A stretch of 63,764 bases of DNA from Chara braunii (GCA_003427395.1 BFEA01000012.1:409812-473575), one strand, 5' to 3'; shown: positions 40,166-47,646, numbered from the stretch's first letter. Notes: generated by a model from the sequence alone, not told the origin. Program-made: numbers and translations.

Positions 40166-42237
40166 TCATTCGTCAAAGTCATCTTCGAAAGTCACTCGGG
40201 AAACCTTCACTGTCGTCGGCTTCTGCTCTTGTTTCCCTTTCGCTTCATTCATTCTCCTCCTCCGGATATCCACATTAATCTCCATCGAAGGTAAGAAGGG
40301 CACAAGTTTCCCTTCATCCGCCCACATCACGTACTTCCTATCATCCAATTCGATGATACCCTCCTTTAGCGCATCCAACATTGCCTGGCAATCTCTCTTC
40401 CGGTGGTCTTTATCTCCGCAATACATACAAGCTTTATCATTCCAGGTCCGCCTCGGACTAGGGTCCCCCTTCTCGCGGCTTTCCGTCCGCGGAGCAACCC
40501 GAACAGGGGTTTCCTCCTTTCTCTGGCTACTATTTTGAAATCTTTCCACCGCCGCCTTTAAGACTTCTATCTGCTTCGCTATTTCCTCCTCTCGTTTTTC
40601 CGGTCTCTTAGCCTCTATCTCATCTTTTGGCTTCCACCTGTTATCCTTAGTGTTGGACCACTTGGAGGTCCCCCATTCCCCATCGTTCCTTTTCCAATCC
40701 CCTTTGCTTCCTTTCCTCCACTCACCGTCGCTCCTGGCTAACTCCCCACTCCTAGGCGAGCTCGCATTAGTATCCTTTCCTTCAACTTTAGGCCTCCTAT
40801 CTTCGTATTGAGGTTTTCCTCCTCCCCTTCCCGTAGTCACTCCCTTTCCTAGATTATCTAGAACTTTTATGAGGTGTGCCTTCGCACTTTGACCTTCCGT
40901 ATCATGGGCCAAGACATTGATTTGCGAAAACGTCACCTTAGGAGGGAGGTCCTGCAGAATCTTCTCACTCTTCTCTTGCGATAGGAACCCTAGGAATATC
41001 CTGCACCTCTCGATTTCGCCCATAAATCCCCCTTTTACCAGTGGATTCGAAGCCTTTTCGTATCTTCTTGCGAACGCCACCAAACTCTCCTCCTCATTTT
41101 TCATTTCTTTCATATCTTCTATTGAATATGAGATCTCGTCACAAGCGAAGATTCTGATAACCCTCTCCCGAATGTCAGCCAGCACCCACTGTCAGATGGC
41201 GTCCCTCACTTCACGGTCTATCTTCGAGGCCGTATGGTGGAGGAAGTTTACAACCATTTCCTGATCACTCCACTTCGCCCTCATTCCCAGTACCTCTCAG
41301 TCATCCATGAACTCTGAAACGTTCTTCCCTGTGAAAATCGTTTGGATCCCGGATAGTGTCGGCGACTGGTACATCACAGCCCCAAGGAAAGGAGACACAT
41401 AGGAGCCCGGCACGTACGCCACAGAGTAAGGGCTCCTTCTATAAGGCTCGCTTGGGGTCTCTCTATAAGGTTCCCTTATTCCGGCATCCGTAAACTTCGC
41501 AACTCTGATCCTGTTCAAAACCTCTTTCCTCCAGCCCTCGCTCTTGGAGCTTCGCCCTTCGAGTTCTTTGGCGCGACTCTCTAACTCTCTTAAAGCCCTC
41601 CTTAACTTTTCTGTATCATTCGTAACATCTATGCCCATTTTTCTCTCTGGCTATTCGTCCTTGACTCCAGCGTTTTCACTTCTCCTCCTATCGAGGTCAG
41701 ATAAGCCCCTTCTGCATTTATCTTTCCTAACTAATTTTCGGACACTCGGCTCAAAGCAACTAGGACCCTCTCGATTGAGCTTTCCAGTATTTCTTGTAAG
41801 GCCTCGAAGTCAGCGTCGTCTCCTTCAGCTCTAACAACTAAAGCAGTGGTCAGTACAGCCTTTGAATAGCGCGAGTTAGCTTTCAGAGTTCTTAATGAGA
41901 CCCCGTCCACTATGTCGTTGGAAAGCTCTTCGGGCTCCTCAGCATCTTCCTTTAATCTCATTTTTGCCTCGGCTATGGTCTCTCTCCACTCCCTGTAAAA
42001 CTCCTCTCCTTCAAAGGGTATCGTGCGAATCTCGATCTTCGCTAATCGAAGCTCGTCGGCCGCTTTCCAGATAGCGCATATCCTAGCCTCCCTAACAGCT
42101 TTCCTAGTAGATTCTGCCTCCTCCTCCTGGCTCAATCTTTCGTCATGTATTATCTCTACTCTCGCTCGCACCAAGGACCCTTCTATCTTCGCTCCTACAA
42201 GCTGATATTTTTCGGCCACCCCTCTGGTATTAGCCAT
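40166..42237 (-). pseudogene. Gag (fragments 42237-41731, 41638-41297, 41185-40166)
   Basis: FTGKNVSEFMDD capsid-start motif and CCHC knuckle CMYCGDKDHRKRDC. The start at MANTRG (42237) is inferred from frame continuity through single stops and frameshifts. Confidence 0.85.
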
Positions 42238-42465
42238 TCCTCCTCTCTCTAGTCTCTCTACAGATCTCTCTTATTCTCCTTGCCAAAAAATCTTCTCTCC
42301 AGTTTATTATTTTTTCCCTCTCTTCTTTGTAGATCCGGGCTAATTCCTCCACCCTCTCTTCAAGCGCGAGGAGCTCCTGTTCATTTGTAGAACCGCACCA
42401 TTCCTTGTAGCTATCCACTAACTCCACTATTCTATCGTTTATTGGATCTAAGTAAATCTCAATAA

Positions 42466-43416
42466 GTGAGACCCACGTCTGGAGCACGAAGGTTGTACCT
42501 TTCGTAGGAATACTGAAACCTCAACCAAGCTTGACGGCACTCCGAAGGAATGGATGGGAGGCAATAATAGATTTTGTACGGAGAATTAAAGACAGTCGGT
42601 CGATCGACAATAGCGCTACTAAGGTTGAGACTGACATGAGCAGTAGCGCTACTGAGACGAAGACCGAGACAGGAAGCGATGCCGGGATCAATGACTAAGG
42701 AGGGGGAAGTAAATATGGTGTCCTTCGCTGGTAGAGTGACATCGGTCATTCGAATTAGGTCGACTAGGTCACTAGCAAACGGAGTTGTCGACGTCTGGCC
42801 AAGGAAGCGATTGAGCGAGAGCGACCTAGGCTCCTTACGCTAGTAGAAGCAGAGAGGAGGATAACTTATGATGTAATGGTCTGGTCGCAGGGATGGCTAA
42901 AGTACGAGGTGGAGAAGGGACCGTCTCTTACGCACGGGATTGTGCCTTTTGGACCGTCTCTCCCTTCTCCACCTCGTACTTCAGCCATCCCTGCGACCAG
43001 ACCATTACATCATAAGTTATCCTCCTCTCTGCTTCTACTAATGTAAGGAGCCTAGGTCGCTCTCGCTCAATCGCTTCCTCCGCCAGACATCGACATCTCC
43101 GTTCGTCTAGTGACCTAGTCGACCTAATTCGAATGACCGATGTCACTCTACCAACGAAGGACACCCTATTTACTTCCTCCTCCTCGGTCACTGATCCAGA
43201 CATCGCTTCCTGTCTCGGTCTTCGTCTAAGTAGCGCTACTGCTCATGTCAGTCTCAGCCTTAGTAGCGCTATTGTCGATCGACCGACTGTCTTTAATTCT
43301 CCGTACAAAATCTATTATTTCCTCCCATCCATTCCTTCGGAGTGCTGTCAAGCTTCGCTGAGGTCTCGGTATTCCTACGAAAGGTACAACCTCCGTGCTC
43401 CAGACGTGGGTCTCAC
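42466..43416. repeat. Long inverted duplication (arms 42466-42920 and 42961-43416, 40-nt spacer)
   Basis: ORFs 42459-42749(-) and 43133-43531(+) translate almost identically, and the arms are reverse complements with scattered substitutions. Confidence 0.95.
42928..43203 (-). CDS. Accessory ORF I, 91 aa, unknown function
   Basis: ATG start next to the end of the preceding ORF. Confidence 0.5.
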   Translation of the reverse strand: MSGSVTEEEEVNRVSFVGRVTSVIRIRSTRSLDERRCRCLAEEAIERERPRLLTLVEAERRITYDVMVWSQGWLKYEVEKGETVQKAQSRA

Positions 43417-46143: not shown

Positions 46144-46851
46144 CTAGACGTTTACGGACTCGCCGTCCAGAATCCTCGCCCTATCTACCTCTCCCAAGAT
46201 AGCAGCCTGCCTCAACTCCTCTCTGATACGAAAGACAATCCGCCACAGCTCTCTACGGGAGGGCACCCCCCTATCTAAACAATAAGTAAGCAACCACGGA
46301 AGTTCTGCAAGAGTCGTCCTGAATTGAGTCGCCTTTCGGATCACGCCTACTAACCTCTCGTGCCTACTCTCATCACCAAAGATAACCCCTATTAGAAATC
46401 TAGGCACGGCAGCAGCTCTCACAGATGAGGACCTAGGGAGCTCCCAATCATAGGCGTATCTAACCGTGTATCTGGCTATAACGTCAGCTCCCGTCCCATT
46501 TGAAAAATCACAAAATATTTGCGCTCCGAACCTGTGACCTAGAGATGCCAGACATAGAAGGGTACGGCAATGTCTGGCGGTGTCGATCACCAGAAACTTC
46601 CACTCCCCCTCAGACAGGTACAACCTAATATTCACGTCCGCTCGAAGTGGTTCACTCTCCCTATCCCTTCTAACACAAGGCCTAGCCTCACACTCGACTC
46701 TCGCCCATATCAATATCCCGTCTCGCACTATCAACCCTTGTTCCACGACCGACCGATACTTGCTCGACCCCTCTAACAGTAAACTGATTAAGTCGTTCTG
46801 CCCGCTCACCTCTGCGAGATGCACTTGGTTCCCTGACTCAATATATACCAT
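46144..46851 (-). CDS. Accessory ORF A, 235 aa, unknown function
   Basis: ATG-initiated open frame whose TAG directly abuts the next ATG. Confidence 0.6.
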   Translation of the reverse strand: MVYIESGNQVHLAEVSGQNDLISLLLEGSSKYRSVVEQGLIVRDGILIWARVECEARPCVRRDRESEPLRADVNIRLYLSEGEWKFLVIDTARHCRTLLCLASLGHRFGAQIFCDFSNGTGADVIARYTVRYAYDWELPRSSSVRAAAVPRFLIGVIFGDESRHERLVGVIRKATQFRTTLAELPWLLTYCLDRGVPSRRELWRIVFRIREELRQAAILGEVDRARILDGESVNV

Positions 46852-47646
46852 ACCTAATCATCACACAATAGGCTCTCTCAGTGTATCTTTTCCAGTGCCC
46901 ACTCTCCAACTGTTGAGCTCACAGACCCCAACGACAGGCCTCCACTAATCACCCCTGTATCCCCTCAAGACGTCAACAAGCCTAGGGAAGAACCGCCCTC
47001 TGGCGTATCTCCCCCTACCCTCATGTCAAGAAGGAGGTTGGATCAACGTGCTATCATTGCTGACCTACCTCCCACGCCGCGAACTGGACACGAGTTGGCC
47101 AACTCATGTGTCCTAGGGTGGACCAAAGTCACACGCGTTCGAGGGGGCGGTGTCTCACTCGTGCATCCTCACTCTCTTATCCATGCCTCTACTCGGCCCA
47201 CCTCACGCATGGTCTCTCTCCCGACTCGTGTTGTGGATCAATTCCCCCAACTACCCATCATGATCATCTAGCCTATCTAGTCCCACCTATCTCCTGTGGA
47301 AGGCGCTGCTCCCCTCCCCTTCAATCCCTTCAGTTCATCCCCTGCTCACAATTTTCTCTCTTAGAGACCAATCAGGGGAGACTAACCAATCACAAGGAGA
47401 AAGCAAAAAGGAAATGCATGACATCACGAGAATGCAACGATCAATGAAATCACGAAATTGCGGAAATCCAAATCTCATCGGGGAACGTCGATCACAGTTC
47501 GGTAGTCCGTCGTTCGCTCACTCGCGCTCGCACCGTGCGTGTATGTACCAAGGAACGTTTGGTATGAGTGTCAAGTGAAATAGAACTCCTACTTTACCTC
47601 CTTGCCTCTGCAGTTACAAGCGGACCGAAGTCCCGAGAGGCAACCT

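Follow-up and report, generated by a model that had tools for sequence, protein, structure and literature searches.

A Chara braunii LTR retrotransposon with a chain of probable accessory genes ahead of gag and an apparently caulimovirus-like layout

The DNA analyzed here, referred to as the window, is a stretch of 63,764 nucleotides (nt) from Chara braunii (GCA_003427395.1 BFEA01000012.1:409812-473575). It holds, on its minus strand, a large Ty3/Gypsy long terminal repeat (LTR) retrotransposon, and it is inside this element, between the leader and gag, that the subject of this report is found: a cassette of closely packed open reading frames (ORFs) that amounts, after allowing for lesions, to nine genes from seven families (O1, O2, D, O5, O7, O8, and G1). 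The original prediction described about eight ORFs tiling this region in operon-like fashion and proposed that they, and then gag-pol, are translated by serial reinitiation. Sense ORFs do tile 46851-41731, as it held; its count did not survive, since several of the limits visible in the window are private lesions of this copy and the true number of genes is nine. The features of the element, in the order in which they are read, are as follows.

47662-50303, minus strand: 5' LTR, about 2.64 kb, with internal tandem repeats of 73 nt and about 30 nt and the terminus ...ACA at 47662
47643-47660, minus strand: primer-binding site (TGGCGCC...), one base past the LTR end, read from the sequence
46852-47642, minus strand: leader, about 790 nt, with 14 ATGs
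46144-46851, minus strand: O1, the first accessory gene, 235 amino acids (aa), intact, with no internal in-frame ATG
45022-46143, minus strand: O2, about 373 aa, its start directly abutting the O1 stop (TAGATG), broken by an in-frame stop at 45870-45868
44554-45029, minus strand: D1, about 158 aa, D family, its ATG overlapping the O2 stop (ATGACTGA), with a frameshift at about 44895-44913
44088-44550, minus strand: D2, about 154 aa, D family, preceded by the junction TAA gtg ATG, with a frameshift at about 44176-44190
43751-44080, minus strand: O5, 109 aa, intact, with a basic N terminus
43226-43745, minus strand: D3, third D-family ORF, preceded by the junction TAG aaccg ATG, with a frameshift at about 43500-43549
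42928-43203, minus strand: O7, 91 aa, intact
42466-42925, no strand assigned: inverted duplicate of 42961-43416, 460 nt, private to the window copy, removing the start of O8
42230-42465, minus strand: O8, C-terminal remnant of about 78 of about 106 aa, its stop overlapping the G1 start (ATGGCTAA)
41731-42237, minus strand: G1, the ninth accessory gene, 168 aa, intact
40166-41638, minus strand: gag (pieces G2 and G3), with stops in the window copy and its ATG in a strong context (aaaATGg)
36394-40165, minus strand: pol, with reverse transcriptase (RT), RNase H, and integrase (IN) detected and several in-frame stops and frameshifts (Pfam, frame map)
28318-35043, minus strand: 3' LTR, in segments 28318-29458 and 33556-35043, split by an insertion of about 4.1 kb (29459-33555)

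The assignment to Ty3/Gypsy follows the order of the pol domains. Pfam matches on the minus strand are, in order, RVT_1 (37810-39123), RT_RNaseH (37409-37771), and Integrase_H2C2 plus rve (36394-37197), and the succession RT-RNase H-integrase is of the Ty3/Gypsy (Metaviridae) type; a protease was located in one relative only, L010. The database relatives of the window proteins are Chara braunii gene models of assembly GCA_003427395.1 only. The two LTRs flank the internal region in direct orientation, the 5' LTR sharing 92% identity with 28318-29458 and 83% with 33556-35043 (blastn). Because the LTRs are only 83-92% identical and pol is cut by stops and frameshifts, the window copy is taken to be old and dead.

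Five ORFs of the window copy (46857-46147, 46143-45871, 45867-45025, 44913-44557, and 44553-44176) lie in one common frame with single stops between them (frame map), as the pieces of a decayed long ORF would, and the cassette was therefore compared, copy by copy, with eleven other Chara braunii loci (handles between L001 and L012; 12 loci including the window). L001 is the closest relative, with 80-86% aa identity in RT and 71-77% identity in nucleotides, and its codon-level alignment with the window was used to tell true boundaries from lesions. L002-L009 were found through RT matches of about 61-67% identity and L010-L012 through matches of the O2 profile, so that the relatives span RT identities of 60-85% to the window copy; assembly gaps are present in several of these loci. 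Modules were mapped by iterated profile searches (jackhmmer) on all sense-strand open stretches of 8 fetched loci and by tblastn in L010-L012. Sequencing reads were placed on 42000-47600 at a likeness of at least 85%, and the variant places reported are the best-supported 40 of 835. The following module orders were obtained.

Window and L001: O1-O2-D-D-O5-D-O7-O8-G1-gag
L004 and L007: O2-O2-...-O7-O8-G1-O5-gag
L010: the same family as L004/L007, with O8 and O5 broken or undetected (tblastn)
L005: O7-O7-O8-G1-D-D-O5-U-gag
L008: O2-O2-D-O7-O7-O8-G1-D-D-O5-gag
L003: O7-O8-G1-O5
L002 and L009: O1 three times, then further ORFs, then gag

The individual modules are well-preserved across these lineages. 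Their lengths are kept at 108-109 aa for O5 (four lineages), 165-171 for G1, 91-95 for O7, 106-112 for O8, 164-165 for D, and 235-247 for O1, and, within each of the O1, O2, and D families, the start methionines are aligned with one another. All module boundaries carry a stop, the interiors are mostly open, and in L005 five intact ORFs follow one another. Between the window and L001, the ratio of nonsynonymous to synonymous differences per site (pN/pS) is 0.25-0.38 for O1, O2, O5, O7, O8, and G1, compared with 0.19-0.20 for gag and 0.10-0.13 for RT/IN, with synonymous sites saturated (pS 0.6-0.9). Ratios for the D-type ORFs, which come from more distant or paralogous copies only, are 0.28-0.46. 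All modules tested are under purifying selection, for the D-type ORFs on distant or paralogous comparisons only, and the true constraint is stronger than pN/pS shows because part of the divergence postdates the death of both copies. We therefore consider it highly probable that the cassette comprises distinct genes conserved as a set. The relatives thus bear out a chain of individual accessory proteins ahead of gag, as originally predicted, and the stop/start junctions between them are conserved; stops and aligned start methionines are found in place of a continuous polyprotein, and the ratios just given in place of a dN/dS near 1.

The order and copy number of the modules vary by lineage, through duplication and reshuffling. 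A partial tandem duplication at about 11065-12024 of L001 covers the end of O2 together with the 5' portion of the first D ORF, and the first D copy there ends in the same eight residues as O2, which shows one way in which modules multiply.

Comparison with the relatives also separates, gene by gene, what belongs to the family from what has happened to the window copy. O1 occurs in L001 as the same 235-aa ORF (64% aa identity, pN/pS 0.29), and three O1-like ORFs, their MV start aligned, are present in L002 and L009. The in-frame stop that breaks O2 is a private lesion, a sense codon standing at that place in L001; the O2 of L001 carries a private stop of its own further on, and the ends of the two O2 genes are at most two codons apart. 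A second O2-like ORF has a shared in-frame stop in L004 (5319-5321) and L007 (3155-3157), and a third copy of the same family, L010, has this ORF intact, at 367 aa. The three frameshifts of the window listed above all interrupt D-type ORFs, which L001 or L005 has in unbroken form. In D1, the N-terminal stretch, which is in another frame, is homologous to the N terminus of D in L001, and two DNA contigs are one base shorter at 44908. D2 is 65% identical to an intact 164-aa ORF, L005:5864-6355, and its domain is uninterrupted in both L001 and L005. Both halves of D3 are assigned to the D family by jackhmmer, and the L001 orthologue has a different frameshift of its own. O5 has the same start and stop, at 108-109 aa, in L001, L005, and L007 (47-60% aa identity, pN/pS 0.30), and its reading frame is always +1 relative to the upstream D ORF. 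O7 is 59% identical to its L001 counterpart (pN/pS 0.32) and is represented by ORFs of 93-95 aa in L004, L005, L007, and L010. ORFs of 106-107 aa homologous to O8 are found in L001, L004, and L007; position 42230, in the O8 stop, varies in three contigs, and the codon remains a stop.

The loss of the O8 start is due to an inverted duplication with arms of 310 and 143 nt that are 95% complementary, creating a near-perfect palindrome of 950 nt at 42466-43416. The original prediction had cited the inverted copy, with ATGACTAA at 42691-42698 on the plus strand, and a second element, with ATGCATGA at 26829-26822, in support of its junctions. Both strings are present. The inverted duplication is, however, private to the window and loses its value as evidence: it is missing from other copies, DNA contigs joining 42459 or 42470 to 42925, and L001 has 24 nt at that place. 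An Rfam search of 41500-47800 gave sub-threshold miRNA-like matches only, on the private palindrome (center 42879-43003), as any long hairpin gives.

Following O8, the overlap at 42237 had been thought to lead into gag. The ORF that it opens, 42237-41731, is the accessory gene G1, which forms discrete ORFs of 165-171 aa in L004, L005, L007, and L010 and is separated from gag by D or O5 modules in L004, L005, L007, and L008. Gag most likely starts at 41638, at the counterpart of ATG 15021 in L001, from which gag is continuous in that copy; it is also continuous in L010, as a 729-aa ORF. The capsid-like part of gag is G3 (41191-40169). No Pfam gag match was obtained within the window itself, and in L010 the G3-like part matches Ty3_capsid weakly (E 0.0011, short of the cut-off), with the protease in the next ORF. 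In L010, the intact gag ORF ends in TAG at 16209-16211 and the protease/pol ORF goes on in the same frame, an arrangement that may reflect stop-codon readthrough for gag-pol or a single lesion.

The junctions between the genes are a second conserved property of the family. The six junction strings of the original prediction (46146-46141, 45029-45022, 44556-44548, 44090-44078, 43753-43743, and 42237-42230) are all found at these positions of the minus strand; four of them stay tight in diverged relatives, and two are looser in L001 (O2/D, 58 nt; O5/D, 78 nt). Across six lineages, the distance is between -23 and +24 nt at 20 of 29 junctions. TAGATG at O1/O2 is identical in the window and L001, as is ATGGCTAA at O8/G1, which is replaced by ATGA in L004/L007 and by a 9-nt spacer in L005. 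The D/D junction of L005 consists of the stop plus 9 nt, and the D/O5 overlap measures 23 nt in L001 and 17 nt in L005. Junctions in L002 include ATGA and ATGGTTAG, and ATGnnTAA is a recurring type. The same junction types recur between lineages of little shared nucleotide identity.

A third property concerns the distribution of start codons. In five lineages, the density of ATGs is 7.5-12.7 per kb in the cassettes and 18.6-22.1 per kb in gag-pol, the exception being the second cassette segment of L001, at 18.3 per kb. Internal methionine makes up 0.64% of the accessory ORFs as against 2.26% of gag/pol. Out-of-frame ATGs in the accessory ORFs number 122, compared with 151.6 ± 8.2 in synonymous shuffles (z -3.6; 0 of 200 shuffles as low), whereas gag/pol shows no such depletion. 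ATG content is lowest in the 5'-proximal O1 and O2, and some L002 ORFs have no internal ATG at all. The start of gag is in a strong context; accessory starts are mostly in medium or weak ones. Avoidance of AUG makes sense if ribosomes have to scan through the accessory ORFs, and it points to scanning-dependent access, presumably by leaky scanning at least in part.

Upstream of the cassette, the leader contains a block (47260-46880) that is 82-93% identical to L001, compared with 55-75% in the O1/O2 coding sequence, and its read depth in DNA contigs is 10-15 times that of the cassette. The block has neither an unusual fold nor an Rfam match; it could serve as a packaging signal, a splice donor, or a promoter element. 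A 32-nt piece of it (about 47181-47212) recurs in L002 and L009. RNA reads placed on the region numbered 144 in one oligo-dT run versus 2 and 4 in the other two runs of the same study, which suggests condition- or tissue-specific transcription of the element family.

The combination of these properties has its closest parallel in the Caulimoviridae. Neighboring ORFs of caulimovirids overlap briefly, meet in fused stop/start codons, or stand a short spacer apart; in cauliflower mosaic virus (CaMV) the overlaps measure 19 and 38 nt and the spacers 1 nt, with a single one of 60 nt. The ORFs are read either by leaky scanning through AUG-free ORFs, as in rice tungro bacilliform virus (RTBV) and the badnaviruses, or by reinitiation driven by TAV, as in CaMV; a virus-encoded reinitiation activator is known from this family only (PMC5902531). 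Like them, the Chara element is a reverse-transcribing element from the plant lineage; several accessory ORFs precede its capsid gene, fused stop/start codons, short overlaps, or spacers lie between the ORFs, and its long leader contains many AUGs. Whereas the upstream ORFs of RTBV have no AUG, the Chara cassette is only AUG-depleted, and the element differs further in its LTRs, its primer-binding site next to the LTR, its integrase, and its nine accessory genes. No TAV, movement-protein, or other caulimovirid homologue was found in the cassette (Pfam), and the leader is without a stable hairpin. The traits of the family (no LTRs, no integrase, an episomal circular double-stranded DNA) are not those of the Chara element, and the likeness is one of gene layout, read from sequence alone. 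The presence of LTRs, a primer-binding site, and integrase places the element among the Ty3/Gypsy retrotransposons and outside the Caulimoviridae; it appears to be one of the LTR retrotransposons that carry extra ORFs, with the gene arrangement of a caulimovirus.

How might such a chain of genes be expressed? We think it somewhat probable that the window holds an old, dead copy from a Ty3/Gypsy lineage with nine conserved genes before gag, expressed as a caulimovirid-like polycistronic RNA. The narrower claim that the accessory genes are translated from one polycistronic RNA we would place close to even but on the doubtful side. In this scheme, the full-length genomic RNA would itself act as the message for the whole cassette, much as the pregenomic RNA of a caulimovirid does: ribosomes would bypass O1 and O2, the 5' genes poor in AUG, through leaky scanning and would terminate and reinitiate where stop and start codons overlap or abut, perhaps with the aid of a protein encoded by the element, and gag-pol would be reached by a spliced or internally initiated route or else by reinitiation of high efficiency. 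The most far-reaching version, a Chara-specific Ty3/Gypsy clade producing nine or more proteins of its own, without known relatives, from one RNA by leaky scanning and reinitiation, perhaps with an element-encoded transactivator, is offered tentatively and is rather unlikely to be right in all its parts. If true, it would place a caulimovirus translation strategy inside the LTR retrotransposon of a streptophyte alga, either by convergence or as a relic of the type of element from which plant pararetroviruses arose.

Several observations weigh against polycistronic expression. If gag had to be reached through nine reinitiations in a row, very little of it would be made unless each were highly efficient, and Pfam detects no TAV homologue among the accessory ORFs of the window and its relatives. 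The depletion of AUGs is partial, with 2-8 ATGs remaining in most ORFs, and L002 accounts for most of it at the synonymous level. Nine of the 29 junctions are looser than the rest (eight spacers of 58-295 nt and one 44-nt overlap). The folding energy of the leader equals that of shuffles (z +0.44 and -0.29), with no stable hairpin or shunt structure, and none of the 12 loci has every ORF plus gag-pol intact. Among the 144 RNA reads, which lie in both orientations at about 1-4x and come from the 12% of one run that was read, no joints were seen, and there was no sign of a full-length polycistronic transcript.

The strongest competitor is expression in the style of complex retroviruses, in which each accessory gene would have its own spliced or subgenomic mRNA, formed from a donor in the leader and an acceptor before each ATG, and the tight packing would be no more than compaction. 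Splicing is known for the env-like ORFs of plant elements (PMC7264820), the conserved leader block could hold the splice donor or a packaging signal, spacers of 92-295 nt stand ahead of gag or some of the ORFs, and gag needs a high expression that serial reinitiation would hardly reach. Such a mode of expression leaves unexplained, however, both the avoidance of AUG in the accessory ORFs and the retention of the ATGA, ATGnnTAA, and TAGATG junction types across lineages, and the placed reads contain no RNA joints at the coverage of about 1-4x in one run; we judge it unlikely, although it deserves to be taken seriously. Far less probable is the mechanism of the original prediction, a calicivirus-like termination-reinitiation dependent on a termination upstream ribosome-binding site (TURBS) and running serially through all ORFs into gag-pol. 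The overlapping stops and starts are those expected of it, and a UGGGA motif does occur 50-84 nt upstream of 4 of the 7 window junctions. The analogy fails on conservation of the motif, which precedes 0 of 13 junctions in the relatives, including the L001 orthologues of O1/O2, D/O5, and O8/G1, at a background expectation of 0.14-0.31 per 80 nt; the 90 nt upstream of the O1/O2 junction are, moreover, among the least conserved of the alignment (60-68% identity), and the ORF taken for gag is G1.

Two further explanations deny that the stops separate genes, or that the chain was ever made of genes at all. A single polyprotein could be produced by recoding if in-frame stops (O1-TAG-O2, D-TAA-D) were read through and changes of frame were achieved by programmed frameshifts. 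The same frame with one stop between is indeed found at O1/O2, D1/D2, Da/Db and O8/G1 of L005, O7/O8 of L004, and U2/U3 of L002, yet same-frame junctions make up about one-third of the total, which equals chance. Each same-frame stop is followed after 0-8 codons by an ATG that aligns with the start methionine of the family, no slippery sites were noticed at the overlaps, though no systematic search was made, and module order is freely reshuffled between lineages; recoding is accordingly very improbable. Least credible of all is that the ORF chain was left by random stops in a former long ORF or a noncoding region. The copy is old, with LTRs 83-92% identical, its pol is broken likewise, and five of the ORF limits in the window are private lesions. 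Boundary stops nevertheless occur in every lineage around interiors that are mostly open, as in the five consecutive intact ORFs of L005, and starts, stops, and lengths are kept at RT identities of 60-85% with pN/pS of 0.25-0.38. For the element family, an artefact of decay is refuted by the conserved ORF lengths, the junctions, and pN/pS.

To return to the set of conserved genes, their products gave no convincing match to known proteins in the searches made. No accessory ORF of the window or the relatives has a significant Pfam match. The O2 profile, run against 1.84 billion representative proteins, gave nine matches, all from Chara braunii; a more limited search, restricted by word and length, gave no relative of O1 outside Chara, and a search for homologous proteins returned no match for O1 and one for O2. 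Sequence-profile searches of the PDB with O1, O2, and D yielded nothing below E 0.5, an ESM Atlas feature search with O2 and D yielded no usable match, and scans of metagenome and viral contigs with D and O5 yielded no relatives. The AlphaFold2 (AF2) model of the D module (Db of L005; mean predicted local distance difference test (pLDDT) 75.6) is an alpha/beta domain, for which Foldseek found no PDB match below E 0.02, no BFVD match below E 0.001, and ESM Atlas matches with template modeling (TM) scores of 0.43 or less. A gelsolin-like fold was considered for this model and rejected, the best VIA-align Z of 5.1 being inside the noise range of the tool. The AF2 model of O1 is poor (pLDDT 52.3) and not usable for structure search. 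These proteins without known relatives presumably act on the host or on the life cycle of the element; silencing, the export of RNA, and the control of translation are examples of processes in which they might take part.

The LTR retrotransposon of the textbooks has two genes, gag and pol, and at most one or a few extra ORFs; the Tat/Ogre lineage has one ORF upstream of gag and, in Ogre, an intron in pol. Nine conserved, selected, and modular genes before gag would widen the known coding range of these elements. The additional ORFs described for plant LTR retrotransposons are the Tat/Ogre ORF upstream of gag, env-like ORFs, and antisense aORFs (PMC7264820), and bdelloid LTR elements carry captured ORFs (PMC5408684); the extra ORFs number one or few and are mostly located between pol and the 3' LTR (PMC7264820, PMC5408684). 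The Chara element resembles these in being of the Gypsy type and in that its copies all have conserved extra ORFs of unassigned function. It differs in having nine genes of seven families, all upstream of gag, tightly packed, and reshuffled. Our literature search found no description of Chara Gypsy elements with such cassettes.

Precedents do exist for parts of the proposed mode of translation. The non-LTR retrotransposon SART1 uses UAAUG stop/start coupling (cited in PMC5902531) and so provides an example of a retrotransposon exploiting this device. Caliciviruses and SART1 share with the Chara cassette the overlapping stop and start codons between long ORFs on a eukaryotic RNA; they differ in that two ORFs are coupled and defined cis elements are needed, and UGGGA is not conserved in Chara. 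In green algae, bicistronic nuclear mRNAs are translated by leaky scanning, extra AUGs in ORF1 suppress ORF2, and some loci have overlapping stop/start codons (PMC11291117). The host there is likewise of the green lineage, and the suppression of ORF2 by AUGs fits the avoidance of AUG in Chara. The algal examples are, however, cellular genes of chlorophytes and mostly bicistronic, whereas the Chara case is a transposon of a streptophyte with nine or more cistrons, known from sequence only. The cassette would offer a natural test bed for how the streptophyte ribosome reads many long ORFs from one RNA. The Caulimoviridae are thought to be derived from Gypsy-like elements, so that a caulimovirid layout in a Gypsy lineage of an alga closely related to land plants is relevant to the origin of that family.

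A last observation concerns the DNA next to the element. An older element flanking the 3' LTR has a diverged D-family module at 27063-27717 on the minus strand, split into ORFs 27439-27717 and 27063-27437; accessory-gene families are therefore present also in a more distant element of the same window.

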